Under the pieces are notes generated by a model. The model worked only from the letters and a program-made list of their open reading frames with translations. It had not been told where the DNA came from and ran no database searches. A program made the translations under genes and the position numbers. Shown here one piece after another: positions 47,822 through 62,758 of a stretch of 64,000 nt of DNA; within the stretch, counting starts at the first letter, position 1, and every line of letters starts with the position of its first letter. The stretch lies in sequence record MZ574431.2; one strand, given 5' to 3'.

Positions 47822-47906
47822 GACCACCGCCTGGGCGTTAACCTTAACCGCCCGTTAGGGTTAACCCCGTCGCGCCCGGCGTTAACCCTGTGGCGCAAGA
47901 AAGCTG

Positions 47907-47934
47907 TTGACAGCATATCAGCCCCATGCGACAA
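47907..47934 (+). promoter_or_regulatory. cassette promoter f
   Basis: TTGACA-GCAT-N9-ATGCGACAA. Confidence 0.8.
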
Positions 47935-47962
47935 GAGCCCATCACAACGAAGGAGGTCGCCC

Positions 47963-48640
47963 ATGGGCGCCGGCATTTCAAAGACCGCACTGAACGCCCG
48001 CGTTCGGCGCCGCCTGCAAAACTTCGCCCACGCCAACGGTGGGACCTACGCCAAATATCAGGCCCAAGGCGTCAAGGACGGCCTGCCCTGGACCAAGGGC
48101 GTCAACGTACTTCGCGCCTCCAATGGCGAGACCTTTGGCCTTGACTGCATCGTCATCGGTCAGGGCGAGGCCGCCCGCCCCTACGGCTTTTCCGACCTCG
48201 ATAGCGCGATCCTGGCCTATCGCCTGGACGAGGCCGAAACCGGCGCGGCGATCTTCGCGGGCCAGCGCGGCGATTACAAGCGCTTGATCGGCCGGCGTAG
48301 CCCGTTCATCCAGACCTGGGGCTTTGACTATTGCCTCGCCCTGGAGTTGGACGACGGCGGGTTTACGCTCTTTCGCCCGAACGGGACCATGCTTCCCTTC
48401 CGGGGCGAGGCCGCCGACAGTTGGGCGCGTGAGCTTTGGGTTCTGTTGCCCAAGGTCTACCGCCGCCACGACGAGCGCAAGCCGCTCTATCGCAGCGAGG
48501 CGATCGCCCAAGCCCAGGCCCTGGACCTGTGGGCCAGCCAGTTCGCCGACGAGGATTGGACCACCGCCGGGGATGACTGGCGCGGCAAGCCCGACCACTA
48601 CAAAGGCCCCCGCAACCTGCCCCACGGCGACCCGCTCTAG
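47963..48640 (+). CDS. hypothetical protein (MGAGISK...)
   Basis: RBS AAGGAGG. Confidence 0.85.
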   Translation: MGAGISKTALNARVRRRLQNFAHANGGTYAKYQAQGVKDGLPWTKGVNVLRASNGETFGLDCIVIGQGEAARPYGFSDLDSAILAYRLDEAETGAAIFAGQRGDYKRLIGRRSPFIQTWGFDYCLALELDDGGFTLFRPNGTMLPFRGEAADSWARELWVLLPKVYRRHDERKPLYRSEAIAQAQALDLWASQFADEDWTTAGDDWRGKPDHYKGPRNLPHGDPL

Positions 48641-48740
48641 CCAGAGGATCACCCAGGCCCCGCGCCTGGGTTCGATCCTTGCCGCGTCCGTTAACCCTAA
48701 CACGGCGTTAAGGTTGACAAAAATAAATGCAAGAAAGCTG

Positions 48741-48768
48741 TTGACAGCATCGAAGCCACATGCGACAA
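48741..48768 (+). promoter_or_regulatory. cassette promoter g
   Basis: TTGACA-GCAT-N9-ATGCGACAA; leader nearly identical to c. Confidence 0.8.
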
Positions 48769-48794
48769 GAGGTCATCGAAACGGGAGACACCCC

Positions 48795-49295
48795 ATGAAC
48801 GACCAATATCCGCCCCTGACCGATGGCCAGCAAGCGGCCCTGGTCGCCTTCGCCGACCAGCATGGCGGCCTGGGCGAGGCCTGGAAGGAAGCCCTCGGCG
48901 ACGCCTGGAGGACGTGCAGCGAGCCCGAGGCCCTCAAGGCCGACCTGCGAACCATCCGCAACACCTATGGCCCCTCCTGGCTCTATGATGAATATGCCTG
49001 GGGCTGGCGCCCGACCCTGCCGGAGTGGGAGCGCGCCGGGCGCTGGACCGACACCCCGCCGCAGCCGACGCCGGGCAAGGCCCGCTGGAGCGCGTCGTTC
49101 GACCCGCCGGCCATCGGCGAGCGCGTCCGGGTGACCACCAACGGCCTGGGCTGGGCGAGGGTCACCGGCTACTTCGTCGAAGGCGACTGGCTGGGCGTGA
49201 TCGTCAAGCTTGAAGCCCCGGCCGACTGGTATGTCAAGCAGAACGGCGGCAACGTCCCCGGCCACAGCTTCGGAACCGAAATCGCCCTGGATTAA
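48795..49295 (+). CDS. hypothetical protein (MNDQYP...)
   Basis: leader ACGGGAGACACCCC-ATG; LRTIRNTYGPSWL. Confidence 0.85.
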   Translation: MNDQYPPLTDGQQAALVAFADQHGGLGEAWKEALGDAWRTCSEPEALKADLRTIRNTYGPSWLYDEYAWGWRPTLPEWERAGRWTDTPPQPTPGKARWSASFDPPAIGERVRVTTNGLGWARVTGYFVEGDWLGVIVKLEAPADWYVKQNGGNVPGHSFGTEIALD

Positions 49296-49451
49296 CCATC
49301 TGGGACTAGCCTGGGCGGCCCTGGCTGGGAAACCAGCCGGGGCGCAAGGCCGCCGGCCGGCGTTAAGGTTAACCTCTCTCGCCCGGCAGTTAAGGTTAAA
49401 CCCGCCGCCCAGGCCGTTAACCAAGGCGCCCAAGAAAGTGCAAGAAAGCTG

Positions 49452-49480
49452 TTGACAAGCATCTAGGCCACATGCGACAA
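49452..49480 (+). promoter_or_regulatory. cassette promoter h
   Basis: TTGACA-A-GCAT-N9-ATGCGACAA. Confidence 0.8.
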
Positions 49481-49507
49481 GAGGGCATCACAACGGGAGA
49501 CACCCCC

Positions 49508-50361
49508 ATGACCACCGCCCCGCGCCTGTTCGCCGATCTCGACGACCTCGCCAAGACCACCTATGTCGTCCGCATCGTCGACAACGGCGGCGAGAGCGCC
49601 GACCGTTACACGATCGTCACCGCCGACGGCGACTATTACGCCTACAGCGCCAACCCCGGCCATCCCCAAGGCGTGGGCCTGTCGGGCGAAGGCATCGACC
49701 CCAAGTGCTGGCCACCTGGGTTGAGCGCGGCGAGGCCGTGGACCTCACCCTAGGCGAGCTTCCCGAGGCCGCCGCAAGGTGCCTGCTGGGCTCGCTGAAC
49801 CAGTCTTTCGAGGACTTCCTGAAAGCCGTCGAGGACGGCGCCCGCGACGCCGTGGCCCCGACTCGCGAAAAGGCCTCGATCCATGACGGCTCTTACGACT
49901 CGTTCGGCAAGGGCCTCTATCGGGTCGGTGAGGCCCTGGCCATCCGCCGCGACGGCGACGACGCGGGCGACGATCTAGGCCCCTACATGACCGCCGTCGA
50001 GGCGGTCAAGAACACCCTCCCCGATGAATACGCCTTCGCCGGCGAGGAATATCTGTCGCCCCGCGACATGACCTTGACCGAGCCGGTCGCCAAGCCGCTG
50101 GCCCTGGTCCACGCCCTGGAGGCCATTCGTGACTATGAATATCAGCGCGACAACCCCGGCTCGTTCTTCGACGGCCTCAACGAGGACGACACTGACGCGG
50201 GCCTGGGGACCGATCGCCGTATCGCCTACCTCAACGCCGTGACCAGTGATGCGCGCATCGTGTCGCGGATCGGCGAGGCCGACGCCCTGGCCCTGGCCCA
50301 TGAGTGCCTCGCCGAACTGTGGACCCTCGCCCAAGAGCGTTGGGAAGAGGCCAAGGCCTAA
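49508..50361 (+). CDS. hypothetical protein (apparent frameshift at 49699-702)
   Basis: MTTAPRLF...DNGGESADRYTIV; one extra C joins it to the 49705..50361 frame. Confidence 0.75.
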
Positions 50362-50373
50362 GACTCCTGCATC

Positions 50374-50403
50374 GCCCCGGCCTCATCGCCGGGGCGTCTT
50401 TTT
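50374..50403 (+). terminator. rho-independent terminator
   Basis: GCCCCGGC/GCCGGGGC + GTCTTTTT. Confidence 0.75.
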
Positions 50404-50490
50404 GACCACCGCCTGGGGTTAACCCTAACGCGACGTTAAGGTTAACCCCGGCGGCCCAGGCCTTAACCATCTTTTCCCGCAAGAAAGCTG

Positions 50491-50518
50491 TTGACGGCAT
50501 GGCATGGACATGCGATGT
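50491..50518 (+). promoter_or_regulatory. cassette promoter i
   Basis: TTGACG-GCAT-N9-ATGCGA. Confidence 0.75.
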
Positions 50519-50549
50519 CACAGAAACACCGAACGGGAGACACCCCCTC

Positions 50550-51515
50550 ATGACCACCTATCGGACGACCACCCGCCCCGACCGCCTGACGCAGATGGCG
50601 TTTTTCTCGTTCGACGCCCTGCGCTCGGACTCGCCCTTCGCCGTCAAGCCCGCCTGTGGCAAGGCGCCGCGCGAGCGCGCCCTGGAGGACTTCGACCCGG
50701 CCGTGATGTTCACCATCAAGCCGCGCGATCGCGGCGACGGCTACACCGCCCATGCCAATTTCGGCGGCTCTGAGGTGTCGTGGATCAGCATCGCCGGCTA
50801 TGGCCTCACCGAGGAGGCCGCCCGCGCTGATCTCCTCGCCCGGTTCATCGCCGATCGCAACGGCGAGGGCAAATATGGCCCTCATGAGCCGCTGCATGGC
50901 TATGCCTGGACCAGCCAACTGGCGCCGTACTGGGATTTGCTGGAGCGTGAGGCGGCCATTCGCCAGCCCTTCGCCCGCACTCTCTATCTGGGCAAGCTCA
51001 AGTCGGGCCGCCCCAATCCCAAGGGCTTTGACGTGTTCGTCGATGTCACATGGACCGGCGAGCGCCTGACGCTGTCGGGCGTCATTGGCCCCAAGGCTAA
51101 CGGCAATTCCTGGGGCGGCTGTGGCCAGATCATCGACAGTCTGGAGCGCAAGGCCTTCCTCGAATTCGCCCCGTCCTGGCATTATGACAGCGCCCTGACG
51201 GGCCTTGTGCAGGCCTGGACGCGCTGGCATTTGAACGACCTTCGCGCCGGCTCGCCGGCTCAGGAAAAGCACCTGCGCCACTATCAGGCCAAGCTCAACA
51301 TTGAGCAGGCCATGACCGCCGGCGCCCATCATCTGGACGCCACCCGCGCCGAACTGGCGCGCGTGGGCCTGGAGCCTGACCCCTACCACCGCCACGGCGT
51401 CGGCTCCAAGGCCTACAGCTACGGCAGCGGCTGGCTGAAAGAGGAGGTTCCAACCCACGTTCTGGACTTCCTGCGCAACCTACCCGCCCCCATCAAACAA
51501 AGCCCCTGGAGGTAA
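50550..51515 (+). CDS. hypothetical phage protein
   Basis: GGCGQI, RWHLNDLRAG, YSYGSGWLKEEVP motifs. Confidence 0.85.
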   Translation: MTTYRTTTRPDRLTQMAFFSFDALRSDSPFAVKPACGKAPRERALEDFDPAVMFTIKPRDRGDGYTAHANFGGSEVSWISIAGYGLTEEAARADLLARFIADRNGEGKYGPHEPLHGYAWTSQLAPYWDLLEREAAIRQPFARTLYLGKLKSGRPNPKGFDVFVDVTWTGERLTLSGVIGPKANGNSWGGCGQIIDSLERKAFLEFAPSWHYDSALTGLVQAWTRWHLNDLRAGSPAQEKHLRHYQAKLNIEQAMTAGAHHLDATRAELARVGLEPDPYHRHGVGSKAYSYGSGWLKEEVPTHVLDFLRNLPAPIKQSPWR

Positions 51516-51519
51516 TCGC

Positions 51520-51908
51520 ATGGCCCTAAACACCGCCGGCCTCGTCGCCCGTCTGCGCGAGGTTCTCGCCGCCGCCCGTCCCTGACCGAATGGGCCAAGG
51601 GGCGCGGTCTACAGCATCAAAACGTGTCCGCCGTGGCGCGTGGCGACACCGTGCCGCAAACCTCGATCGCCACGGCCCTGGGCTTGCGCCGGGTGACCAT
51701 CCAAGCCTATCTGGCGCCCAGTGAAGCCCTGCCCCTGCTTCCGCCGGGCTGGGAAGAGGTGCAGCCCGGATCGGCGACCCCGGTCGGCTGGACCCCTCGC
51801 GACAAGGCCGCCCAACCCATCCCGCAAAGCGGTTCGGCCGATCGCGCCGCCCGCGCCATCCGCCTGGAGCGGCTGCGAAACGAAAAAGAAATGCGAGAAA
51901 GCCGTTGA
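51520..51908 (+). CDS. Cro/XRE-like HTH protein (apparent frameshift at 51575-77)
   Basis: corrected reading APSLTEWAKGRGLQHQNVSAVARGDTVPQTSIATALGL. Confidence 0.6.
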
Positions 51909-51932
51909 CAGCATAACAAGGCCATGCGACAA
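51905..51932 (+). promoter_or_regulatory. cassette promoter j
   Basis: TTGACA-GCAT-N9-ATGCGACAA; -35 overlaps the HTH gene stop. Confidence 0.8.
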
Positions 51933-51958
51933 AGCCTCATCAACTGAGGAGCGCCGCC

Positions 51959-52177
51959 ATGGCCTATGCTCAAGCCTTCGTCGTCAACGCCTACATCAAC
52001 GCTCATGTCGAGGAAATCGCCTATAGCGCCATGATGGAAGACCGCGCCGCCGAGGAACTCGACGGCCTGGACTTTGGCGACCGCTGTTACTACGGCGACC
52101 GCGCTTATACGGAACAAAGGATGCTGGAGCGCTACGCCCTGGCCGCCGCTGATCTTCACCCCATCCTCTACGCCTGA
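51959..52177 (+). CDS. hypothetical protein
   Basis: RBS GAGGAG. Confidence 0.8.
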   Translation: MAYAQAFVVNAYINAHVEEIAYSAMMEDRAAEELDGLDFGDRCYYGDRAYTEQRMLERYALAAADLHPILYA

Positions 52178-52191
52178 AAGGAGGGCGTTCC

Positions 52192-52584
52192 ATGGCTAAG
52201 AAAAAGCTTCCGACGCCAAACCCGTATCGCCGCTACAGCGTCGAGGGCCTGGACGCGGCGACGAAGGCCGCCCGCCGTCCTTCGCGCGCCTGCATCCGCC
52301 ATCACGTGGAAGAGGCCGCCAAGCGCCGCGCCGACGCCCTGGCCGCCCTGGCCAGCAAGACCCGCGTTTCGCGCGCCTCGACGATGAGCCTCCAGATGTG
52401 GCAAGAGGCCGCCACCGTCTCGCTCCACATCCTGGCGCGCAAGGCCCTGGAATACCATCGCATGAGAGCGTTCGCCGTCTCCAGCGGCGGCGGCTCCTAC
52501 GCCCCGAGCGGCTGGCCTCTCGACCGCCACGCCCGCGACCAATGGGCCGCCCTCAACCCTCAAGCTTTCAGCGAGGCCGCATGA
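52192..52584 (+). CDS. basic hypothetical protein
   Basis: RBS GGAGG. Confidence 0.8.
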   Translation: MAKKKLPTPNPYRRYSVEGLDAATKAARRPSRACIRHHVEEAAKRRADALAALASKTRVSRASTMSLQMWQEAATVSLHILARKALEYHRMRAFAVSSGGGSYAPSGWPLDRHARDQWAALNPQAFSEAA

Positions 52585-52793
52585 CCCTGACCTATCGCAC
52601 CGACTACACGCCCGACGACGGCAAGACCATCGAGGTCAGCGACCCGATGACGCGTGAGCAGGCCATGCGGCAAGCCGCCTACCTGTCGCGCACCTACGGG
52701 ACCGCCTACGCCATCGCCAGCGACGGCAAACGCGACACCGGCCAAAGGGTCTATCAAGACGGCCGGTTCGCCTACCAAGACGACAAGTTCTAA
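52581..52793 (+). CDS. hypothetical protein (MTLTYRT...)
   Basis: ATGA overlap. Confidence 0.8.
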   Translation: MTLTYRTDYTPDDGKTIEVSDPMTREQAMRQAAYLSRTYGTAYAIASDGKRDTGQRVYQDGRFAYQDDKF

Positions 52794-52796
52794 GGA

Positions 52797-52823
52797 AGGG
52801 CCTGGAGCGATCCGGGCCTTTTC
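52797..52823 (+). terminator. rho-independent terminator, same sequence as at 55538
   Basis: AGGGCCTGGAGCGATCCGGGCCTTTT. Confidence 0.75.
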
Positions 52824-52908
52824 ATCGCCGGCCGGCGTTAACCCTAACGCGGCGTTAAGGTTAACCCTGGGACGCGGGGCGTAAACCAAGGAAAATGCAA
52901 GAAAGCTG

Positions 52909-52937
52909 TTGACACGCATCGAAGGACCATGCGACAA
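52909..52937 (+). promoter_or_regulatory. cassette promoter k
   Basis: TTGACA-CGCAT-N9-ATGCGACAA. Confidence 0.8.
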
Positions 52938-52963
52938 AGGCTCACCAACAACGGAGAGCCCCG

Positions 52964-53521
52964 ATGCTCGACCACCCGCTGATCGTCACCGCCCTGGCCA
53001 ATCTTCGCGAAGGCCCCGGCATGACCAATTCCGCCGATCGTCAGACCAAGGTCACGAGTCATCAACTGACCACGGCGATCATGCTCAAGGCCGCCGACCA
53101 GATCGCCCAAGCCCTGGGCGACCTCACCCCGCCGCCCTGCCTGGGCTATTTCCTCGCCAACGAGTTTGATCGCCTGGGAGACACCTGGGGCGACTTCATG
53201 ACCGCCTTCGACGAAGGTCAGGCCCTTGCGGATGCTGACGAGGTGCTGGCGTGGTATCGCCGCACCGTCCGCGACGATCCCGAGGGCTACGCCGAGCGCA
53301 TGGACGGCGCCTTGCCCAACGCCGCCACCCGAGCCCAGATCGAATCCGACTACGCCGCCGCCAAGGCCGGCGGCCGGTTCATCGTGGTTCACGGCAAGAC
53401 CGGCTCGCAGTACGGCGACCGCCTGTCGCAACGCTTCGCCACCTACGAGGCGGCCGAAGAAGCCTGCGCCCCCTACCGCAAGCCCGGAACCTGGGCTTAT
53501 GTCGATGAGGCCGCCTCGTGA
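52964..53521 (+). CDS. hypothetical phage protein
   Basis: RBS GGAG. Confidence 0.85.
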
Positions 53522-53919
53522 CCAAGTTCGAGCGCCTGGACGGCTTCACGCAAGCCTTCATTTCGTCGATGGTGACGGGCAAGCCCTACGGCTTCGCCGA
53601 CCTGTCGCCCGACGCCCTGGCCCGCATCATCGCCGATTGCGAGGCCTTCCAATGCGGGCGCCTGGACAAGCCCGCCCGCATGGTCTTTGGCCGCACGCCG
53701 CCGGCCACCACCGCCGTCATGGCCGTGGTCCGGGGCTCCCTGTGCTGGCACGCCGGCCGGCACTTCTGGTTGTCGCGCCAAGGCCTGCCCGACGGCTTCG
53801 ACCAGAGCGAGGCCTTCGCCGGGACCTGGGCGCCGCTGCTGCACAAGCTGGCCCTGACCTTCCCGCCCCTCACCGTTCACCAAGACGCCCAAGGCGTCGT
53901 CACCGTCTCGGAGGCCTGA
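53518..53919 (+). CDS. hypothetical protein, paralogue of 61499..62155 C-domain
   Basis: DGFTQAFI...IIADCEAFQ...[12 protein letters not shown]. Confidence 0.8.
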
Positions 53920-53921
53920 CC

Positions 53922-54557
53922 GTGGACCGCATCGAATCCGCCACCCGCGCCGTGGACACCTTCGTAGGCGCCACGTGCGCCCCCGCCTCCATGTTCGGGC
54001 ATCTGCGAGACGACGACGCCCGCGACGGCGCGCTCTGCGAACTGCTGCGCAATCTGCGCCACTTCGCCGACACCTACGGCCTGGACTTCGCCGCCCTGGA
54101 CGCCCGCGCCGGCCGGCTCTACGAGGGCGACACCGCCCAACTCGGGACCCTCGTTCTCGACGAGTCGGCCTGGAGCGCCTACGGCGACACCCTGGACACG
54201 CGCCGCGCGGCGATCGCCGCCGCCCTGCTGGCCAAGGACCACGCCGAACCGTCCGCCAGCCGCGAGGAGGCCGAAACCGAGGCCATGACCGATCACGCCG
54301 CCGTCGTCGGAACCGTGATCCGGGTAAACGACATCACCGGCTATTACGGCGAGACCGGGCAAGAGGACTTGCGCCCCCATGACGGCGCCCCGCCCTTCGC
54401 CGTCGTCGTCATGCCCTCGCCGCGCGATGATGTCATCTACTGGAATGACGAGCATCTGGACGCGCGATGGAACGTCGAGCCCGCGCCGGGCGAAACCCGC
54501 CTCTATGGCCTGCGCTCGCTCTGGGTCTTTGGCCGCTCTTTCGTCGTGGAGGGCTGA
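53922..54557 (+). CDS. hypothetical protein (VDRIESA...)
   Basis: GTG start; CELLRNLRHFAD motif. Confidence 0.8.
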   Translation: MDRIESATRAVDTFVGATCAPASMFGHLRDDDARDGALCELLRNLRHFADTYGLDFAALDARAGRLYEGDTAQLGTLVLDESAWSAYGDTLDTRRAAIAAALLAKDHAEPSASREEAETEAMTDHAAVVGTVIRVNDITGYYGETGQEDLRPHDGAPPFAVVVMPSPRDDVIYWNDEHLDARWNVEPAPGETRLYGLRSLWVFGRSFVVEG

Positions 54558-54559
54558 TC

Positions 54560-54703
54560 ATGACCAGCCTGCAACGCGCCGGCTACGAGGCCCAGCGCGC
54601 TGGCGTCAAGTGGTGGCACAACCCGCACCCGTCGGGCTCCCCCGCCGCCTATCAATGGGACGAGGGCCACACCTTCGCCCGCCGTTCGATCACCCCCGTC
54701 TAG
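54560..54703 (+). CDS. 47-aa hypothetical protein
   Basis: AGYEA...NPHPSGSPAAYQWDEG. Confidence 0.7.
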   Translation: MTSLQRAGYEAQRAGVKWWHNPHPSGSPAAYQWDEGHTFARRSITPV

Positions 54704-54715
54704 GAAAGGCCACCC

Positions 54716-55012
54716 ATGACCGAAGAACCGATTCGCCTGCGCTCCGAGCCCGCCAACATGACCACCGTCGCCGTGGGCGGGGTGCTGCTGTACTTCTCAT
54801 ATCTGACCCTGGTGGGCTTCCGCTGCCCGCGCCTGGGAACCGTCGTCAATCCCGAGGGCCGGGCCAAGTCCAAGACCACCGCCGCCCACATGACCCACTT
54901 TGGCCTCAACGCGCTGGGAACGGGTCAATGCAGCACTGAAGAAGACTTTCAGACCCTGGCCATGGGTGCGGTCATGGGTTCGAGCGGCCCTGATCACCTG
55001 TTGCTCAACTAA
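54716..55012 (+). CDS. hypothetical phage protein
   Basis: RBS AAAGG; SKTTAAHM motif. Confidence 0.8.
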   Translation: MTEEPIRLRSEPANMTTVAVGGVLLYFSYLTLVGFRCPRLGTVVNPEGRAKSKTTAAHMTHFGLNALGTGQCSTEEDFQTLAMGAVMGSSGPDHLLLN

Positions 55013-55127
55013 AGACCTCTCCAAGGTCTTGGGCTGTCATCTTCCCGTTAGACTATGACAGCCCAGCCCCCGCGAACACTTCCCAACACTCGAAAACACA
55101 ACCCTGTGTAGAAAGCGATTCCAAGTA

Positions 55128-55190
55128 ATGCGTTTGATCGAAGGCGGCGGCTTCCTGGCTTTGTGCTTCCTGCTGTGGCTGCTGCACTGA
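55128..55190 (+). CDS. possible 20-aa hydrophobic peptide
   Basis: MRLIEGGGFLALCFLLWLLH; weak RBS. Confidence 0.3.
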   Translation: MRLIEGGGFLALCFLLWLLH

Positions 55191-55209
55191 GAAAACTGCA
55201 AGAAGGCTG

Positions 55210-55237
55210 TTGACAGCATCGAGAGCCCATGCGACAA
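55210..55237 (+). promoter_or_regulatory. cassette promoter l
   Basis: TTGACA-GCAT-N9-ATGCGACAA. Confidence 0.8.
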
Positions 55238-55265
55238 AGGCCCATCGCAACCGGAGACCGCCGCG

Positions 55266-55532
55266 ATGGCCACCGACTACGACGATTACGGGCAAGACGC
55301 CTACGACAATTACGAAGGCTCTGTCATTGACGAGGCTTTCGAGCGCAACGCCGAAGACGCCTATGAGGACGACCTGGGCGCCGAAGACCCCGACCTCGAA
55401 TTCCCCGACGAGGAGGACGACGAGGCCGACCTTCGCCGGGCCGAAGGGCTCATGCCCTGGGCCACCCCCGAGGGCGTGGAGCCGGGGCAGTTCCCCCGCC
55501 GCGCCTACGACGACGACGAAATCCCGTTCTAG
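55266..55532 (+). CDS. 88-aa hyper-acidic protein ending in SSB-type tail DDDEIPF
   Basis: 32/88 D+E; C-terminus YDDDEIPF; too short and acidic for an OB fold. Confidence 0.85.
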   Translation: MATDYDDYGQDAYDNYEGSVIDEAFERNAEDAYEDDLGAEDPDLEFPDEEDDEADLRRAEGLMPWATPEGVEPGQFPRRAYDDDEIPF

Positions 55533-55537
55533 CGGGG

Positions 55538-55565
55538 AGGGCCTGGAGCGATCCGGGCCTTTTTC
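55538..55565 (+). terminator. rho-independent terminator
   Basis: GGCCTGGA-GCGA-TCCGGGCC-TTTTT. Confidence 0.75.
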
Positions 55566-55677
55566 GCGCCGGCCAGCGTTAACCTTAACGCGCGCTTAAG
55601 GTTAACCCCGCCCGGACCGTTTTTCGTTTTGGCTGTCGGGCGGGATTTCGTTTTGTCTGTCGAGTGCAAGAAAGCTG

Positions 55678-55706
55678 TTGACACGCATCGCAGCCCCATG
55701 CGACAA
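55678..55706 (+). promoter_or_regulatory. cassette promoter m
   Basis: TTGACA-CGCAT-N9-ATGCGACAA; 36 bp identical to q. Confidence 0.8.
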
Positions 55707-55734
55707 AGGCTCATCACCAACGGAGGCCTTTTTC

Positions 55735-56034
55735 ATGGCCAGCTACGAGATCACCATTTCGGTTGACGTGTCGGTCGAGGACATCGAACTCCTTTACGCC
55801 GCCGCCCTGGCCCGCGCCAAGCAAGAGGGTCAACCCGACGACAACGCCGTCGCCCTGCTGACCAATAGCGACCCGCTGGGCCGCCCTGACGTGCCGTCCT
55901 GCCTCATGATGCTGTTCGATCCGGGCGTGAGCCCTGACGGCACCTCGATCAACAACACCGCCGCCAAGCGCGCGGAGTACGACGAGGACGAGGACATGGA
56001 CGCCTACGAGGAATCCCTGGAGGACGACAAGTGA
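55735..56034 (+). CDS. acidic hypothetical protein
   Basis: RBS GGAGG; tail EYDEDEDMDAYEESLEDDK. Confidence 0.85.
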   Translation: MASYEITISVDVSVEDIELLYAAALARAKQEGQPDDNAVALLTNSDPLGRPDVPSCLMMLFDPGVSPDGTSINNTAAKRAEYDEDEDMDAYEESLEDDK

Positions 56035-56486
56035 GCTATTCCGGCCCCATCACCATCAGCCAAGGTCTGCGCTGGCGCCTCGATAGCTACGGCAACGGCG
56101 CGGCCTATGCCTTCTACGACCTTTCGGCCGGCGCCAGCGTCTGGCTTGAGGGCGACGACGCCAGCGCCTTCCGCGAGGCCCTCGATACGGTCGAGACCCT
56201 GCGTCCGCAAGACGAGCCTGACGAAATCCTGGGTCATCTCTGGGACGAGCACGACTATGGCGCCGCCGCCACGGTGCAGGTTGTCGTCGTGCGCCGGGTG
56301 ATCCGTGAAGACACCGTCATCGCCTTGCGCCCTGGCGAGACCGAAGCGCAAGCCAAGGAACGGGCGATTTTCAATCAATCCTCCCTCAAGTGGGATACCT
56401 ACGACTGCGAATATAGCGCCGACCCCGTCACCACCGAGCCGGCCGCCGAATACGACTATCTGCGCCAACTGCCCGGCGCCATCTAA
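56031..56486 (+). CDS. hypothetical phage protein
   Basis: GTGA overlap. Confidence 0.8.
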   Translation: MSYSGPITISQGLRWRLDSYGNGAAYAFYDLSAGASVWLEGDDASAFREALDTVETLRPQDEPDEILGHLWDEHDYGAAATVQVVVVRRVIREDTVIALRPGETEAQAKERAIFNQSSLKWDTYDCEYSADPVTTEPAAEYDYLRQLPGAI

Positions 56487-56493
56487 GGCCCTG

Positions 56494-56522
56494 GCCCGCC
56501 CTGACCCGGCGGGCCTTTCTTT
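56494..56522 (+). terminator. rho-independent terminator
   Basis: GGCCCGCC/GGCGGGCC + TTTCTTT. Confidence 0.8.
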
Positions 56523-56586
56523 CGCCGATCGCCGTTAACCCTAACCGCCCGTTAGGGTTAACGCCAAAGAAACTACAAGAAAGCTG

Positions 56587-56615
56587 TTGACACGCATAGC
56601 GGCCCTATGCGAGAA
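56587..56615 (+). promoter_or_regulatory. cassette promoter n
   Basis: TTGACA-CGCAT-N9-ATGCGAGAA. Confidence 0.8.
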
Positions 56616-56651
56616 CGTCCCTGCCGCATTGGCGGCCTGGAGACCTATGCC

Positions 56652-57230
56652 ATGACCCGCGATTTCGTTCCGCACGTCATCACCGCCCGCACCATCGACG
56701 GCGCCTGCTATTTCATCGGCGGCCAGACCTATGGCGATCACCTGGGCCACGCCCGCGTCATGACCAAGGACGACGCCGAACGCCGCGTCGGCGCCCTCCA
56801 GCGCCTGGAGCGCGCCAGCGCCGAGACCCGCCGCGCCAACGACCCCCATGAGGACGACTTTTCGGGCGTCTATGGGCTCGCCGTCGTGGCCACGACCTGG
56901 GAAGCCCTGGACAAGGCCGCCGAGGCGGTCAAGACCTGGGAAGAGGCCGACCTTGCCGCCGAGGAGGCTCACGACGCCCTTTATGACGACTATGACCCGA
57001 ACGAGGGCATGAGCGCCGAGGAGATCGCCGCCGAAAGCGCGTGGTGGCGCGAGCAGATGGCCAAGGACCAGCCTTTCGCCCCTGGCCAGTCGGTGACCAT
57101 CACCGATGAGCTTCACCCCGACCACGGCGCCAGCGCCCGCGTCGTCGAAGCCGAGCAATCGGGCTATCTGGTGCTTGCCCTGGGCGAGCGCCTGACCTGG
57201 GGCTTGGCCAAGGGCGTGGCCGCCGCCTAA
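56652..57230 (+). CDS. acidic hypothetical protein (MTRDFV...)
   Basis: RBS GGAG. Confidence 0.8.
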   Translation: MTRDFVPHVITARTIDGACYFIGGQTYGDHLGHARVMTKDDAERRVGALQRLERASAETRRANDPHEDDFSGVYGLAVVATTWEALDKAAEAVKTWEEADLAAEEAHDALYDDYDPNEGMSAEEIAAESAWWREQMAKDQPFAPGQSVTITDELHPDHGASARVVEAEQSGYLVLALGERLTWGLAKGVAAA

Positions 57231-57233
57231 AGA

Positions 57234-57263
57234 AAAAGGCCCTGGCGAGCGCCGGGGCCTTTC
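57234..57263. terminator. bidirectional terminator
   Basis: AAAAAGGCCCTGGC-GAGC-GCCGGGGCCTTT. Confidence 0.75.
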
Positions 57264-57301
57264 GATCGTAAGCTGTGATTAACCCTAACGCCGCCTTAAG
57301 G

Positions 57302-57538
57302 TTAATCCTTGGCCGAGCGCCGATGCGGGTTCGAGCGAAGCCATGTGTCGGCTTCGGTGCGGGTCGAGAACGGCGCCCCGCCAATGCCCGTGGTTCCGTC
57401 ATCCCATTGGATCGTCCAGCCGACCTGAATGACTTCCCAGTCCTGGGAGACGCCGAACGGGATCGTAGCATGGATAGGGATACGGTTATGGGGCGGGCGC
57501 TTGAGTTGGCGCACCCGCGCCGGGATCACTTGCGGCAT
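57302..57538 (-). CDS. 78-aa hypothetical protein, only convincing minus-strand gene
   Basis: own promoter TTGACA-N16-TACTTT (57608-57581), RBS AGGA; GWTIQWDDGTTGIG..PFSTRTEA. Confidence 0.6.
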   Translation of the reverse strand: MPQVIPARVRQLKRPPHNRIPIHATIPFGVSQDWEVIQVGWTIQWDDGTTGIGGAPFSTRTEADTWLRSNPHRRSAKD

Positions 57539-57656
57539 TGGGATTTCCTGTAGGTCAAGCGGAGGCTTGGGCCATCGAGGAAAGTACCACGCCGCCGGCC
57601 CATGTCAAGAACGGCGCCACGGGTCAAGAATCGCGACTCAAGGCGCAAGAAAACTG

Positions 57657-57685
57657 TTGACACGCATCGCGCCGCCATGCGACAA
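57657..57685 (+). promoter_or_regulatory. cassette promoter o
   Basis: TTGACA-CGCAT-N9-ATGCGACAA. Confidence 0.8.
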
Positions 57686-57712
57686 AGGCTCAGCACAACA
57701 GGGACACCCGCC

Positions 57713-58156
57713 ATGAACCTCGAAGACTGGTTTTACCCTTCCTCCGACATCTCCAACTCTGACCAGACCATCGACTCCCGCGACGTCATCAAGCGGGTCG
57801 ATGAACTGCAAGCCGCTTTCGATGACGCCGAGATCGATCCTGATCAGGTGCTCGCCGACGACGAGCTAGACCTGGGCAAGGACGCCGAGGAAATCCGCGA
57901 CGCCGCCCAAGAGCTTAAGGCGCTCAAGGACTTCGCCGAGGAGGGCGAGAACTACGCCGCCGACTGGACGAGCGGCGAAACCCTGATCCGAGAAAGCTAT
58001 TTCGTCGAGTATGCCGAGCAGCTTTGCAAGGACATCGGCGACCTGCCCGACAACATCCCCGGCTATCTGGCCATTGACTGGGAAAAGACCGCCAACAACA
58101 TCAAGGCCGATTACTCCGAAATCGAGTTTGACGGCGTCACCTATCTGGTCCGCTAA
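57713..58156 (+). CDS. acidic ArdA-like antirestriction / DNA-mimic candidate
   Basis: about 40/147 D+E; C-terminal YLAIDWEKTANNIKADYSEIEFDGVTY resembles ArdA C-domain. Confidence 0.55.
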   Translation: MNLEDWFYPSSDISNSDQTIDSRDVIKRVDELQAAFDDAEIDPDQVLADDELDLGKDAEEIRDAAQELKALKDFAEEGENYAADWTSGETLIRESYFVEYAEQLCKDIGDLPDNIPGYLAIDWEKTANNIKADYSEIEFDGVTYLVR

Positions 58157-58163
58157 GGCGAGC

Positions 58164-58191
58164 GGCCGGCGTCCCCTGGGCGCCGGCCTTT
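58164..58191 (+). terminator. rho-independent terminator
   Basis: GGCCGGCG/CGCCGGCC + TTT. Confidence 0.65.
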
Positions 58192-58259
58192 CCCTGGCCA
58201 CGATCGGTTAACCTTAACGCCTGGGGCCAGACGGTTAAGGTTAACGCAAGGCCCTGGCG

Positions 58260-58356
58260 AGGGAACGTCAAGGCCGCGAGCTAGGATTACTCGCGAATGG
58301 CTTAGCCGGCGTCCAGCCGGCGGCGCCTTCGACCACCGCGAGGCGGCCTTGACCCT
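58260..58356 (-). ncRNA. candidate ~95-nt structured ncRNA (four-way junction)
   Basis: perfect 11-bp closing stem 58267-77/58343-53, three inner hairpins, minus-strand TTGACA at 58383-88. Confidence 0.4.
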
Positions 58357-58414
58357 GACAGTCTCGCCCAAGCGCCGCGCCATGTCAACCGATTTCTTAT
58401 GTGCAAGAAACCTG

Positions 58415-58442
58415 TTGACAGCATGTCCGCCCCATGCGAGAA
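58415..58442 (+). promoter_or_regulatory. cassette promoter p
   Basis: TTGACA-GCAT-N9-ATGCGAGAA. Confidence 0.8.
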
Positions 58443-58470
58443 AGCCTCATCATTCACTGGGAACGACCCC

Positions 58471-59130
58471 ATGCCCCGCACCGTCACCAAACAGGTCTAC
58501 AAGTTCACCGAACTGAGCGACAAGGCCAAAGCCAAGGCCGTCGAGTGGTATCGCGAGCTTGAGATGCAAGAAACCGGCTGGTGGGATTACGTCTATGAAG
58601 AGGCCGACCGCATCGCCGACGCCTTCGGGATCACGCTCAATCGCAGCGAAGCCGGCAAGCCCATGTCCGGCCCCGACATCCTGTTCAGCGGCTTCTACAG
58701 CCAAGGCGACGGCGCCTGTTTCCAAGGCCGCTACGCCAGCCCCCAAATCCCGGCCGTGGAGGGCTTCGCCGCCCTCGGGATCGAAGACGACAACCTCAAG
58801 GCCCTCGCCGTGCGCCTGGACGCTCTGAGCGCCAAGACCGGCGGACGCCTGACGACCGTGGTTCGCCACAGCGGTTACTATTATCACGAGTATTGCACCG
58901 CCTTCGAAACCGAACTGACCGACCCTGAAGACGGTTCGGACTTCGACCCCTACGCCTATGACGTGGAGGATGAAAAGGAACTGGTCGACATCCTGCGCCG
59001 GTTCATGAAGTGGATTTATCGTCAGCTTGAAGAGGCCGATGAGGCCCGCCTGTCTGACGAGACGATCACCGAAGCCCTCGCCGACTCCGACTACGAGTTT
59101 GAGGCCAGCGGGGCGCCGACCAGAGACTAG
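58471..59130 (+). CDS. acidic protein of a plasmid/ICE leading-region family (often labelled antitoxin-like)
   Basis: YKFTELSDKAKAKA, FSGFYSQGDGACF, IYRQLEE...SDETITEAL. Confidence 0.65.
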   Translation: MPRTVTKQVYKFTELSDKAKAKAVEWYRELEMQETGWWDYVYEEADRIADAFGITLNRSEAGKPMSGPDILFSGFYSQGDGACFQGRYASPQIPAVEGFAALGIEDDNLKALAVRLDALSAKTGGRLTTVVRHSGYYYHEYCTAFETELTDPEDGSDFDPYAYDVEDEKELVDILRRFMKWIYRQLEEADEARLSDETITEALADSDYEFEASGAPTRD

Positions 59131-59265
59131 GCCAAGACGGCGCCCGGCCCTCCCGCCGGGCGCCGATCGTGGTTAACGCCGTGTCGGGTTTTTGTAACCT
59201 TAACCCTCTGTTAAGGTTAATGAAAAAGGCCCTTTCCGTTAACCACGAATAATGCGAGAAAGCTG

Positions 59266-59294
59266 TTGACACGCATCGCAGCCCCATGCGACAA
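59266..59294 (+). promoter_or_regulatory. cassette promoter q
   Basis: TTGACA-CGCAT-N9-ATGCGACAA. Confidence 0.8.
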
Positions 59295-59320
59295 AGGGCC
59301 ATCGCAACGGGAGACACCCC

Positions 59321-59608
59321 ATGACGAAACAAGCCCCAAAGCGCCGCAAGCGCTACCCGCCCAAGAGCGACGCGGCCAAGGCCCGCGCCGCCGCCAAGAG
59401 CAAGGCGTTTTTCGCCCGCCACGCCCTCAAGGCCACCGAGGCGGCTATCGCCGCCATGGCGGCGGGCGATCAAAAGGCCGTCCAACGCCACGCCAAGGAC
59501 GCCCGGCGCCTCAATCGCTGGATGTGCCACAAGCGCGACATCGCCGCCGCCTTCAAGGCCGTGTTCGACATCCGCGCCGCCGCTCAAGCCCTGCGAACCG
59601 CCGCATGA
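59321..59608 (+). CDS. basic Ala-rich hypothetical protein
   Basis: leader ACGGGAGACACCCC-ATG. Confidence 0.8.
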   Translation: MTKQAPKRRKRYPPKSDAAKARAAAKSKAFFARHALKATEAAIAAMAAGDQKAVQRHAKDARRLNRWMCHKRDIAAAFKAVFDIRAAAQALRTAA

Positions 59609-59820
59609 TCCGCCGCCCCGCCCTCATGACCTGCATCGCCGGCGCCGCCCTCATCCTGTCGGGCGTGGCCGTTTCGGCCGCCAGCGCCCCGGAAAAGCGG
59701 GTTCTCGTCGGTCAATACTGCGACGGCGACCCCGTGCGCCTCTATGGCCTGGAGGACGGCGAGGAAGCCGCCCAAGCCTGCGCCATCGTCGAGGTCCACG
59801 CCCTGCCGAAAGGACTCTGA
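59605..59820 (+). CDS. small exported protein
   Basis: ATGA overlap; signal peptide ending AASA; Cys pair. Confidence 0.7.
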   Translation: MIRRPALMTCIAGAALILSGVAVSAASAPEKRVLVGQYCDGDPVRLYGLEDGEEAAQACAIVEVHALPKGL

Positions 59821-59822
59821 CC

Positions 59823-60281
59823 ATGCCCGGACATCCCGCCTTCGATCTTGATGAGCGCGAAGCCGCCGCCGTCATTGCCGGCCTGCGCCTGCTGCAACGC
59901 ATCGGCGTGCCGGTCGAGCTAGAAGACGTCGCCACCAACGGCGGCGCCTTCGACGTGCTCGATGACACCGCCATCGACGCGCTCTGCGAGCGCATCAATC
60001 TGGACCTGACCACCACGCCGCCGCCCGTGCTGATCGAGAGCCGCGAGGAGCCGGTTCGCGTCGAGGACCTCAAGGGCGGCATGATGTGCGACCTTGAGGG
60101 CGACATGTTCGCCGACAACGCCGGCCGTTACCCCGAATTCGAGTTCGCCTATGCCGTCGTTGTCGAGGTGCAGGTCAACCCGAAGGGCGAGCCGCCTGGA
60201 ACCGTGATCGTCGAGTTCGACAAGATCACCGTGGCCTTTCCCATCGGCCACACCCTGCCGACCATCAAGGACCCGCAATAA
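59823..60281 (+). CDS. hypothetical phage protein
   Basis: EAAAVIAGLRLLQ motif; RBS AAGGA. Confidence 0.8.
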   Translation: MPGHPAFDLDEREAAAVIAGLRLLQRIGVPVELEDVATNGGAFDVLDDTAIDALCERINLDLTTTPPPVLIESREEPVRVEDLKGGMMCDLEGDMFADNAGRYPEFEFAYAVVVEVQVNPKGEPPGTVIVEFDKITVAFPIGHTLPTIKDPQ

Positions 60282-60296
60282 AACGCAAGAAAGCTG

Positions 60297-60324
60297 TTGA
60301 CAGCATAATCAGCCTATGCGAGAA
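60297..60324 (+). promoter_or_regulatory. cassette promoter r
   Basis: TTGACA-GCAT-N9-ATGCGAGAA. Confidence 0.8.
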
Positions 60325-60362
60325 AGGATCGTCAAAGGCGATCCCGCCTCGTGGAGACACCC

Positions 60363-60707
60363 ATGAAACTGGTCAAGTCCAACATCATCGACAACCACCG
60401 CATGACGGCGCTGCGCAACTGCATCACCGTCGCCATCGAGCGCTTTCAAGAGCACGTCGATGAGATGAAGCCGGCCGCCGAGCAATACGAGGCCGCCGAC
60501 GACGCGGGCAAGAAGGCCCTGGAAGCGGCCACGCCCATGGTTCACCCTCGCGTCTATCGCCAGCTTTCCGACCAGTTCGAGGGCCAGATCGAAGAAGCCC
60601 GCAAGCTGCTGGACTGGCTGGACGGCGACGCCTACCAAGACGCCTCGGGCGAGTTCCCCGAAGGCACCGATTTCGTCGTCGTCGCCGGCCTCGTCCGCGA
60701 CTACTGA
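60363..60707 (+). CDS. hypothetical protein (MKLVKS...)
   Basis: leader GGAGACACCC-ATG. Confidence 0.85.
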   Translation: MKLVKSNIIDNHRMTALRNCITVAIERFQEHVDEMKPAAEQYEAADDAGKKALEAATPMVHPRVYRQLSDQFEGQIEEARKLLDWLDGDAYQDASGEFPEGTDFVVVAGLVRDY

Positions 60708-60714
60708 CCAAGCC

Positions 60715-60742
60715 AAGGCCCGCCTCACCGGCGGGCCTTTTC
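60715..60742 (+). terminator. rho-independent terminator
   Basis: AAGGCCCGCC-TCACC-GGCGGGCCTT-TT. Confidence 0.8.
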
Positions 60743-60827
60743 CTCGCCAGCCCACGTTAACCTTAACGCCGCGTTAGGGTTAACGGCGGGCCGGTTTTCG
60801 TTAACCAAAGAAAATGCAAGAAACCTG

Positions 60828-60856
60828 TTGACTGACATCTTGGTTCTATGCGACAA
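60828..60856 (+). promoter_or_regulatory. cassette promoter s (left arm ACAT)
   Basis: TTGACT-G-ACAT-N9-ATGCGACAA. Confidence 0.75.
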
Positions 60857-60883
60857 AGGCCCATCACCAACGGGAACGCTCCC

Positions 60884-61282
60884 ATGACCCAAGACCTGAC
60901 CACCGAAGAACGCAACGCCAAGCTCGCCGAAATGGCCGATCACTGGCGCGAGCAACTCAAGGTCGCCCAGGCTCGCCTTGACATGACCGTGCTGGTCGGC
61001 AAGGGCTTTATCTGCGCCCTGGACCGCGATCAATCGATGGCGATCCGCGCCGATGGTCCCGACCGCTATCGCCTGTGGCCGGTGTCGGCGCACCTGACCC
61101 ACCTCCTCCACTTCACCAAGCTTGACGCCATGCGGGTCGCCGCCCATTGGAACGCGCGCCTCCCCGACGACAAGCAAGACCTGCGAGTGAGCGCCATCCA
61201 CTACCGCGACGCGCTCAAAACCTTCGTGGAAGTGGCCAAGTCGCAAATCGCCTGGATCGAAGGCGGCTGCAAGGCGGCCTGA
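60884..61282 (+). CDS. hypothetical protein (MTQDLT...)
   Basis: leader AACGGGAACGCTCCC-ATG. Confidence 0.8.
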   Translation: MTQDLTTEERNAKLAEMADHWREQLKVAQARLDMTVLVGKGFICALDRDQSMAIRADGPDRYRLWPVSAHLTHLLHFTKLDAMRVAAHWNARLPDDKQDLRVSAIHYRDALKTFVEVAKSQIAWIEGGCKAA

Positions 61283-61441
61283 TCTTGACGCCCTCCGGCT
61301 CCGGCCGGAGGGTTAATTTTTGGCCAGCCTGCATTAACCTTAACGCGCAACCGTTCTCAGGTTAACCTTAACGTGAAAACGGTTGCAGGTTAACCTTAAC
61401 CCCGCCCGCCCAGGCCTTAACCAAACCTCGCGAGAAAACTG

Positions 61442-61470
61442 TTGACTCGCATCGAGGCCCCATGCGACAA
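61442..61470 (+). promoter_or_regulatory. cassette promoter t
   Basis: TTGACT-CGCAT-N9-ATGCGACAA. Confidence 0.8.
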
Positions 61471-61498
61471 GGTGACATCGACAACCGGAGGCCCTTCC

Positions 61499-62155
61499 AT
61501 GGCCAGCCCTGAAGACATCGCCACCGTCCAAGCCGCCGCCGTCTCTTTCGACCTGGAAGCGTGGGAAGCGGAAAAAGGCGAGTATGCCGAGGCTCATTGG
61601 CGTTATCTGAACTACGCCTTTGAAATCGAGACCTATTCGCACATGTTCAGCCAAGCCGAACGCGACGCCGCGCGCCGTCTCATCGAAGAATATGAGACCG
61701 CCCAGACCGACCATCAAGGCACCTATGTTGACGAGAGCGCCGCGCTCATCGCCAGCGCCGACGCCTTCACCCGCCAATATATCGCCAGCGCCCTTTGGAC
61801 CGGCGTCGAGTTGCCCTATGGCGACGACCGCGCCGACAGCGGCGGCGCCTATGACCTCGAAGAGGATTCGATCATCCCCGCCACGCTGCGCGACATGATC
61901 GAAGATTGCGCCACCTTCCAACGCGACAACGCCGACACCCTGGCCAAGGCCTATGAGTCGGACGTGTATATTCAAGGCGAGCGCTACAACGCCAGCAACG
62001 CGGGGCACGATTTTTGGCTGACCCGCAACGGCCATGGCGCGGGCTTTTGGGATCGCGGCCTAGAAGAGGTCGGCGAGGCCCTGACCAAGGCCTGCAAGGC
62101 GTTCGGGGAATACTATCTCGCCATGAGCGACAACGGCGAAATCTCCAAGATGTGA
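61499..62155 (+). CDS. acidic hypothetical phage protein
   Basis: NAGHDFWLTRNGHGAGFWDRG motif; RBS GGAGG. Confidence 0.85.
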   Translation: MASPEDIATVQAAAVSFDLEAWEAEKGEYAEAHWRYLNYAFEIETYSHMFSQAERDAARRLIEEYETAQTDHQGTYVDESAALIASADAFTRQYIASALWTGVELPYGDDRADSGGAYDLEEDSIIPATLRDMIEDCATFQRDNADTLAKAYESDVYIQGERYNASNAGHDFWLTRNGHGAGFWDRGLEEVGEALTKACKAFGEYYLAMSDNGEISKM

Positions 62156-62160
62156 CGATC

Positions 62161-62189
62161 AAGGCCCGCGCTTGACGCGGGCCTTTTTC
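62161..62189 (+). terminator. rho-independent terminator
   Basis: AAGGCCCGCG-CTTGA-CGCGGGCCTT-TTT. Confidence 0.85.
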
Positions 62190-62256
62190 TGCCCCGTCCG
62201 GGTTAACCTTAACGCCGGGCGACTTTCCGTTAACCGAAGAAAATGCAAGAAAGCTG

Positions 62257-62285
62257 TTGACTCGCATCTTCGTTATATGCGAACT
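62257..62285 (+). promoter_or_regulatory. cassette promoter u
   Basis: TTGACT-CGCAT-N9-ATGCGA. Confidence 0.75.
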
Positions 62286-62315
62286 TGACGACATCGGAAA
62301 TCAAGGAACGCCGAC

Positions 62316-62690: not shown

Positions 62691-62758
62691 GCCCAACTTG
62701 ACGCCGCTTCACCCCCTGTAACGCGTCCCCTTCCACCCCTAGGCCTTGGAGACACACA

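Follow-up and report, generated by a model that had tools for sequence, protein, structure and literature searches.

A small acidic protein of Caulobacter phage J4 with an SSB-type C-terminal tip as a possible competitive ligand of SSB-tip pockets

Why does an 88-residue phage protein end in the C-terminal signature of a bacterial SSB, a protein that binds single-stranded DNA, while lacking the domain by which SSBs hold single-stranded DNA (ssDNA)? The question is raised by CcrJ4_gp029 (hereafter gp029), encoded in a 64,000-nucleotide stretch of sequence record MZ574431.2, which we call the window. By megablast, positions 50000-60000 of the window are 100% identical to Caulobacter phage J4, and a direct comparison places the whole window at J4 positions 248001-312000. 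J4, a Bertelyvirus (Dolichocephalovirinae) that infects Caulobacter vibrioides CB15, has a genome of 312,338 bp. We tentatively propose, at a little less than even confidence, that gp029 is an early competitive ligand for the pockets that receive SSB tips. The protein probably plugs into the DNA-repair and replication network of the host without binding DNA.

An SSB-type tip on a hyper-acidic body

The coding sequence and its parts are as follows.

55266..55532, + strand: coding sequence of the 88-residue acidic protein (CcrJ4_gp029, UTU08780.1, annotated "hypothetical protein"); an open reading frame (ORF) whose ratio of non-synonymous to synonymous substitution rates (dN/dS) is well below 1
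55266..55430, + strand: hyper-acidic body studded with Tyr and Phe, residues 1-55, recognised by composition; it differs between phages and has low-confidence predicted helices
55431..55529, + strand: invariant C-terminal module, residues 56-88, LRRAEGLMPW...FPRRAYDDDEIPF, from the alignment of J4, CcrBL9 and CcrSC
55509..55529, + strand: SSB-type tip DDDEIPF, residues 82-88, with the stop codon directly after it; from the sequence and its match to Caulobacter-type SSB ends

The gene starts with ATG at 55266 and stops with TAG at 55530-55532. Its final codons, GAC GAC GAC GAA ATC CCG TTC TAG, encode DDDEIPF-stop, so that the protein ends in ...RRAYDDDEIPF-stop; the complete module of residues 56-88 reads LRRAEGLMPWATPEGVEPGQFPRRAYDDDEIPF. 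With 18 Asp and 14 Glu, 32 of the 88 residues are acidic. There is no Lys, and the protein has 5 Arg, 6 Tyr, 4 Phe and 1 Trp, an isoelectric point (pI) of about 4.05 and a net charge of about -27. Sequence and composition thus confirm the ORF, the acidic content and the DDDEIPF end given for it in a preliminary description of the window. In the six-frame ORF set of the window, gp029 is the sole ORF with an IPF end.

The same description had called for a comparison with the SSB C-terminus of the host. Performing a codon-biased DNA pattern scan for DDEIPF-stop over one-genome-per-species bacterial contigs, we find that 101 of the 106 recovered ORFs are E. coli-type SSBs (95%), among the matches listed. 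The motif is essentially SSB-specific in bacteria and therefore carries SSB-tail information. The carriers include a Caulobacter sp. metagenome-assembled genome (MAG), a Caulobacteraceae MAG and Phenylobacterium genomes, all of which end in ...F-S-A-D-L-D-D-E-I-P-F. Among the 120 nearest relatives of the Caulobacter sp. SSB, 118 end in DLDDEIPF and 2 in DMDDEIPF; the named ones come from several Caulobacter sp. (including isolate Root655, WP_056719995.1), Caulobacteraceae and Phenylobacterium sp. An independent study gives LDDEIPF as the end of SSB in Rhodobacter sphaeroides and in 5795 of 18,841 alphaproteobacterial assemblies (PMC13490951).

The terminal five residues, DEIPF, are identical between gp029 and the Caulobacter-type SSBs. 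The likeness reaches further upstream, where the host sequence G-P-R-E-S-F-S-A-D-L-D-D-E-I-P-F and the phage sequence F-P-R-R-A-Y-D-D-D-E-I-P-F share P-R-x-x-aromatic followed by an acidic run. A capture of the tail module from a host ssb gene was considered and rejected, the similarity, as compared at the protein level, covering only about 13 residues with an indel.

Is gp029 itself an SSB? Searches with gp029 gave no Pfam, PHROG or NCBIfam match at E values up to 10 and no match among PDB sequences, where the best hit (E 0.81) was unrelated. The AlphaFold2 model, computed from the window protein and its CcrSC homologue, has a mean pLDDT (predicted local distance difference test) of 57 and a pTM (predicted template modelling score) of 0.19. 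It shows three tentative helices (residues 5-16, 23-37 and 49-59; pLDDT 50-60), no strands, and coil over the last 29 residues. The preliminary description had seen no room for an oligonucleotide/oligosaccharide-binding (OB) fold, and the strandless model and the empty profile searches bear this out. From the SSB family (PF00436), gp029 therefore has a linker predicted to be disordered and the acidic C-terminal tip D-D-(D/E)-I-P-F, and lacks the OB-fold/oligomerisation domain. The non-canonical phage SSB profiles in Pfam and PHROGs (DUF669, Enc34/T7 gp2.5-type, small-SSB PHROGs 18154 and 7364) do not match it either; other tip-bearing viral proteins do match such families with the same tools. 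As far as sequence and model tell, gp029 is not an SSB, because AlphaFold predicts neither a fold nor strands for it and the searches of Pfam, PHROG, NCBIfam and PDB return nothing.

A miniature, very divergent phage SSB, which would be a true ssDNA binder with the usual tail, is for these reasons very improbable. Such a protein would also be hard to reconcile with a pI of 4, a net charge of -27 and the lack of Lys, in addition to the absence of strands and of any SSB-family match in Pfam or PHROGs. What speaks for it is that J4 has no other recognisable SSB, and that some tip-bearing phage proteins of 77-153 residues match small-SSB PHROGs. No SSB is annotated in the 312-kb J4 genome, and phmmer with the E. 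coli SSB over all J4 ORFs returned none. A non-canonical SSB could hide among the hypothetical proteins of J4. On balance, we regard the miniature-SSB reading as practically excluded.

Conservation and expression of gp029

Matches to gp029 by tblastn are confined to Bertelyviruses. The protein is identical in J4, C1, C2, RB23, BL47 and two Bertelyvirus sp. records, and overall identity is 82% in CcrBL9 and 84% in CcrSC. In the alignment of J4, CcrBL9 and CcrSC, substitutions fall only in residues 1-55, and the last 33 residues are invariant. Over residues 56-88, the three pairs differ by 7, 5 and 2 synonymous changes versus 0 non-synonymous ones. The N-terminal part (residues 1-55) has a dN/dS of about 0.2-0.5. 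The codon comparison thus indicates that the tail module is under purifying selection.

A more distant relative occurs on a single Bertelyvirus-like Logan contig, L125 (SRR27946880_1473), with the gene at 3856-4212 and downstream. One frameshift splits this gene over two reading frames; as it is seen in a single assembly, it may be an error. The called 118-residue product has an unrelated C-terminus, and the tip is encoded in the other frame. The second-frame piece keeps MPW and ends in ...DDDEIPF-stop, and its linker between MPW and the tip has diverged; the two frame pieces were compared separately and were not joined. Conservation of the terminal IPF among homologues had been put forward as a check on the SSB-tail idea, and every homologue keeps the tip, the L125 relative included when its second frame is read.

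Wider searches added nothing to this family. A word index of 5.8e9 proteins held no relatives beyond the Bertelyviruses, and a full HMMER search of 1.84e9 representatives gave as its only other match a low-complexity protein of 2108 residues. No further homologue was found in IMG/VR, nor in JGI metagenomes searched with protein patterns and an MPW...DDDEIPF DNA pattern.

A chance ORF, or a chance motif without function, finds its one argument in this orphan family restricted to one genus. An exact C-terminal motif of 6-7 residues is expected at about 1e-8 to 1e-9 per protein, as estimated from residue frequencies. Even at about 1e-8 per protein, accident is an extremely improbable source for a terminal motif that is 95% SSB-specific in bacteria among the matches listed. 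As the tail module has up to 7 synonymous changes and not one non-synonymous change, and as the promoter, ribosome-binding site and terminator are conserved as well, this explanation is practically excluded.

The acidic body suggests another explanation, that residues 1-55 imitate DNA or ssDNA and the tip only helps to localise the protein. It would then block a host protein that binds DNA, for example a restriction enzyme, a nuclease that processes ends, or SSB through its OB fold. DNA mimicry is the mode of action of Ocr, ArdA-like proteins and T7 gp5.9, which are small, acidic and made early by phages, and SSB tips can fold back on OB folds. In gp029, the 32 acidic residues of 88, the lack of Lys and the regularly spaced Tyr and Phe flanked by Asp or Glu fit such a role, as does a small protein in a presumptive early region. 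The body, however, evolves fast (dN/dS 0.2-0.5), and it is the tail module that does not vary. Known dsDNA mimics have rigid folds, and gp029 has no confident fold and no sequence relation to the solved DNA mimics; homology to Ocr/ArdA/gp5.9-like proteins and a stable predicted fold with DNA-like charge geometry are both absent, although disorder still allows mimicry by charge. An exact host-type tip would also go unexplained if it were merely auxiliary. We therefore consider the mimic quite unlikely. It had been suggested in the preliminary description, and the support that we can add to it is that of charge.

The expression signals of gp029 and their surroundings are as follows.

39615..64000, + strand: right copy of the 24.7-kb direct terminal repeat, annotated as repeat_region at 287615-312338 of the J4 record; its right end lies beyond the window
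55210..55240, + strand: promoter-like element of a repeat-specific class, TTGACAGC...CCATGCGACAAAGG, a recurrent motif conserved in CcrBL9, CcrSC and L125
55253..55257, + strand: Shine-Dalgarno-like GGAGA, 8 nt 5′ of the ATG, read directly and invariant in DNA alignments
55532..55567, + strand: intrinsic-terminator-like hairpin and U-run, from folding (-28.5 kcal/mol, z = -4.74, 0 of 200 shuffles fold as well)
55579..55605, no strand assigned: palindrome TTAACCTTAA-N7-TTAAGGTTAA, which includes TTAA-N7-TTAA; it lies at the border with the following cassette and precedes the promoter at 55678 by 72 bp

The final 24.4 kb of the window belong to the right-hand copy of the repeat, and the left copy holds an identical gp029, so that tblastn finds two places per record. 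A generic sigma-70/terminator scanner missed both the promoter and the terminator of gp029; the promoter was identified through a recurrent motif and the terminator through folding. The motif, TTGAC-N11-16-CCATGCGA(C/A)AA(A/G)GG, precedes many terminal-repeat genes. Twelve copies lie at window positions 44326-61467, all on the + strand and all within the repeat, as opposed to 0.01 predicted from chance; J4 has none in its other ~263 kb. The motif defines a repeat-specific transcription class. The gene accordingly has a cassette of its own, as had been described, made up of a promoter of this 12-copy class, the GGAGA and the hairpin with its U-run. A position in the terminal repeat together with a host-type promoter marks gp029 as an early-gene candidate, and it is from this position and promoter class that we infer early timing.

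Two other elements of the repeat were observed around this cassette. The palindromes TTAACCTTAA-N7-TTAAGGTTAA occur at 13 sites between window positions 42906 and 63381, all in the repeat, with 0 expected. They have a CtrA-box core, TTAA-N7-TTAA, and typically lie 70-100 bp upstream of repeat-class promoters, and the perfect TTAA-N7-TTAA boxes of J4 are all within the terminal repeat. No such palindrome lies upstream of gp029's own promoter. For phiCbK-like phages, among them CcrSC, a concentration of CtrA sites in the terminal repeats has been published (PMC9437464). The second element is an unannotated 20-codon ORF at window 55129-55191 (+ strand), which ends just 5′ of the gp029 promoter and whose product, a hydrophobic peptide, reads MRLIEGGGFLALCFLLWLLH in J4 and L125; CcrBL9 and CcrSC have MKLLEGGGLLALCFLFWLLH instead. 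Its conservation in four lineages with conservative changes suggests a real micro-protein.

Competition for SSB-tip pockets or a docking tag

The following course of events is proposed. The host RNA polymerase would transcribe gp029 from the terminal repeat, that is, from DNA at both genome ends, and the product would serve as a host-takeover protein. It would be an intrinsically disordered, hyper-acidic polypeptide with the 33-residue C-terminal module as its only strictly conserved part. The free C-terminal ...DDDEIPF-COO- would enter the hydrophobic and basic pockets where SSB-interacting proteins grasp the SSB tail. Such occupancy would be unproductive because gp029 has no ssDNA-binding domain. 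By rivalling the SSB tails, gp029 would uncouple from SSB-coated ssDNA one or more enzymes of genome maintenance or replication restart. Further contacts, and with them affinity or selectivity for a particular target, are probably contributed by the invariant MPW...FPRRAY stretch upstream of the tip. That the 26 residues preceding the tip are invariant speaks for an interface larger than the tip itself, and so for one specific target more than for a pan-decoy. Free SSB C-terminal (SSB-Ct) peptides are reported to compete with SSB for partner proteins in vitro (PMC5872125, PMC10143822).

We then looked at the tip on other phage proteins. A second carrier in J4 is the HNH endonuclease CcrJ4_gp101, which lies outside the window at 47530-48033 of the J4 record. 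It ends in ...EIDFDADEIPF (EEDEIDFDADEIPF), an SSB-type tip on an acidic extension, and its CcrSC orthologue has the same tail. The tip on the HNH nuclease is a Bertelyvirus-specific graft, found in the same genus as gp029, because the orthologues in phiCbK, CcrBL10 and the Brevundimonas phages Gurke and Kabachok end in basic tails without it. The J4 annotation of gp101 (104 residues) starts later than its PHROG match and the 152-residue CcrSC RefSeq model suggest.

A different tail was observed on CcrJ4_gp483 ('DNase H-like domain protein'; window 34508-35209, + strand), which matches PHROG 12078 (unknown function). It is long and acidic, ...EFDEDFDDEDEDLF, and has a terminal Phe (...DLF) that is not of the IPF type. 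Possibly J4 has here a docking tail of another type.

Beyond J4, scanning IMG/VR for DDDEIPF-stop, we obtained at least 119 ORFs of 22-927 residues, of which 22 match E. coli-type SSB among the matches listed. With the DDEIPF pattern, E. coli-type SSBs make up 27 of 113 ORFs in viral contigs, again among the matches listed, versus 101 of 106 in bacteria. Single-sequence phmmer under-counts divergent phage SSBs, and the true share of non-SSB carriers is therefore below the apparent 76-82%. The remaining viral carriers were sampled with Pfam and PHROGs. In this sample, the SSB-type proteins are DUF669 proteins, Enc34/T7-type SSBs and small SSB-like proteins. The tip also occurs on superfamily 2 (SF2) helicases (ResIII, Helicase_C and a zinc ribbon), about eleven of which share ...GIPDDEIPF (two were tested), and on a DnaB-type helicase and archaeo-eukaryotic primases (AEP) with PriCT_1 from uncultivated phages in IMG/VR. 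Many tip-bearing viral proteins of 64-125 residues have no family. By their domain matches, the tip-bearing helicases, the primases and the J4 nuclease are unambiguous non-SSB carriers. The pattern indicates that the SSB-type tip is a portable and widely reused C-terminal module in uncultivated phages.

A second small acidic family, unrelated to gp029, was seen among the viral ORFs (68-109 residues, about 25% Asp and Glu; IMG/VR L272:3862-4173 and L293:2531-2857). It has a conserved core ...AWILSPFDSWERNP...HPEDDY..., and its DEIPF-like tip varies or is missing in some members.

The tip on the HNH nuclease and its wide reuse on phage helicases and primases, neither of which the preliminary description contained, open a different explanation. 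The DEIPF tip of gp029 could be an address label for a receptor used in phage DNA metabolism, so that gp029 would be a docking tag or adaptor and not an inhibitor of host repair. The receptor could be a host SSB-interacting protein exploited by the phage, or else a replisome or packaging protein of the phage to which the host SSB tail binds as well. As a regulator or adaptor, gp029 would bridge this receptor to a ligand of the acidic body, or would time the access of the HNH nuclease and host SSB to it.

The Bertelyvirus-specific addition of the tip to the J4 HNH endonuclease fits such a label, as does the same tip on SF2 helicases, a DnaB-like helicase, AEP primases and DUF669/Enc34-type SSBs of uncultivated phages. 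Acidic, Phe-terminated tails serve in phage T7 to attach both SSB and helicase-primase to the phage polymerase. J4 encodes a T7-like DNA polymerase, a RecD-like helicase, another helicase, ribonucleotide reductase and about 30 tRNAs; having a T7-like polymerase and no recognisable SSB, it presumably works on host-SSB-coated DNA. Yet gp029 has no second recognisable domain to bridge to. It lies among terminal-repeat genes with host-type promoters and not in the replication module of J4, at 125-150 kb, and no evidence points to a phage receptor. Weighing these points, we hold the docking tag to be unlikely, though it is the main rival of the competitive ligand.

Several of the same facts weigh against competition for the pockets. 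On the J4 HNH endonuclease and on the helicases and primases of other phages, a recruiting tag is a more natural role for the tip than a decoy. Since J4 lacks a recognisable SSB and has its own polymerase and helicases, the tip could be received by a protein of the phage to which the host SSB tail binds too. As a decoy, gp029 would moreover have to prevail over thousands of SSB tails. The match to the host tip is imperfect at positions -6 to -8, where gp029 has DDD after Tyr and the host has DLD, and it stands at the level of genus and family, as the SSB of C. vibrioides CB15 was not met by name. The family is limited to one phage genus, so that its conservation is sampled over short evolutionary distances.

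With these points considered, the competitive ligand is still the reading that we favour, at the tentative strength given at the outset. The preliminary description as a whole is partly supported, in that both of its sequence predictions hold; the candidate partners that it names (ExoI, RecJ, RecQ, RecG, PriA, Ung, DnaG and chi) are those of E. coli. We see it as possible, if rather doubtful, that gp029 is the first natural 'SSB-tail-only' protein, a competitive inhibitor of the SSB hub and one case of a wider grafting of the tip by phages. In that wider and largely undescribed practice, the host SSB tip would be a portable short linear motif, attached to small accessory proteins as well as to helicases, primases and nucleases, by which phages enter the host SSB interactome, redirect it or jam it.

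Significance and comparison with known systems

Bacterial replication, repair and recombination are organised around SSB as their hub. The pocket for its tail is a target of antibiotics, and phage SSBs or SSB-tail-binding enzymes are what several newly described anti-phage systems sense. If our proposal is true, a natural protein that is nearly tail-only would show that phages attack or exploit the SSB hub directly. Its invariant 33-residue module would then offer an evolution-optimised ligand for structural study of alphaproteobacterial tip pockets. Were binding to host tip pockets shown, this would make gp029 the first natural ligand to consist of the SSB tail only, and a starting point for exploring a use of the portable motif by phages that is broad and under-annotated. 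The contrast in our census, with 95% SSBs among the bacterial carriers and most viral carriers not of the E. coli SSB type among the matches listed, suggests that tail mimicry is a general and under-annotated trait among phage proteins. It could be of use in annotating phage genes listed as 'hypothetical', and tip variants could serve for host prediction.

The closest likeness is to the bacterial SSB-Ct itself. In its Caulobacter form (...FSADLDDEIPF), it has the same extreme C-terminal DEIPF, before which stand a P-R motif, an aromatic residue and then acidic residues; in both cases the tip ends a Pro/Gly-rich stretch predicted to be disordered. Unlike bacterial SSB, gp029 has no OB fold, no ssDNA-binding/tetramerisation domain and no detectable homology, and its body is acidic instead of basic.

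The tails of T7 gp2.5 and gp4 offer a parallel in arrangement. There, too, a phage with a T7-like polymerase employs a single docking tail on two or more of its proteins, to be compared with gp029, the HNH nuclease and gp483 of J4. The T7 tails differ in sequence type and sit on DNA-binding enzymes, and none of our searches returned them as relatives of gp029. The DNA mimics Ocr, ArdA, T7 gp5.9 and Arn resemble gp029 in being small, strongly acidic and presumptively early anti-host proteins. They differ in that no sequence or structural match links them to gp029, which has no stable predicted fold, and we know of no SSB tip on any of them.

Among phage-encoded proteins, the DUF669 proteins of prophages mimic bacterial SSBs in their DDDIPF end (PMC13687109). 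The two-OB-fold phage protein Bas52_0087, with an FDDDIPF end, triggers the DRT10 defence in an interplay with the SSB-tail-binding exonuclease SbcB (bioRxiv 10.64898/2026.04.29.721553). Phage recombinases, for their part, depend on the host SSB tail (PMC13490951). Like gp029, the DUF669 proteins and Bas52_0087 are phage-encoded, carry a host-type tip and have a proposed link to host ssDNA metabolism. In contrast to gp029, they keep a ssDNA-binding domain and can replace SSB on DNA; gp029 could only occupy partners, without bringing them to DNA.

Synthetic SSB-Ct peptides and mimetics come nearest in the activity proposed. They are reported to inhibit SSB-partner contacts (PMC5872125, PMC10143822). 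A free tip that competes for the tip pocket without a DNA-binding domain, as described there, is what we propose for gp029; those ligands are man-made and short, and gp029 has 80 further residues. In Creative-Commons PMC papers and bioRxiv, we found no description of a phage protein that is tail only. In summary, phage SSB-like proteins that copy the host tip were already known, and the new feature of gp029 is the tail without a DNA-binding domain.

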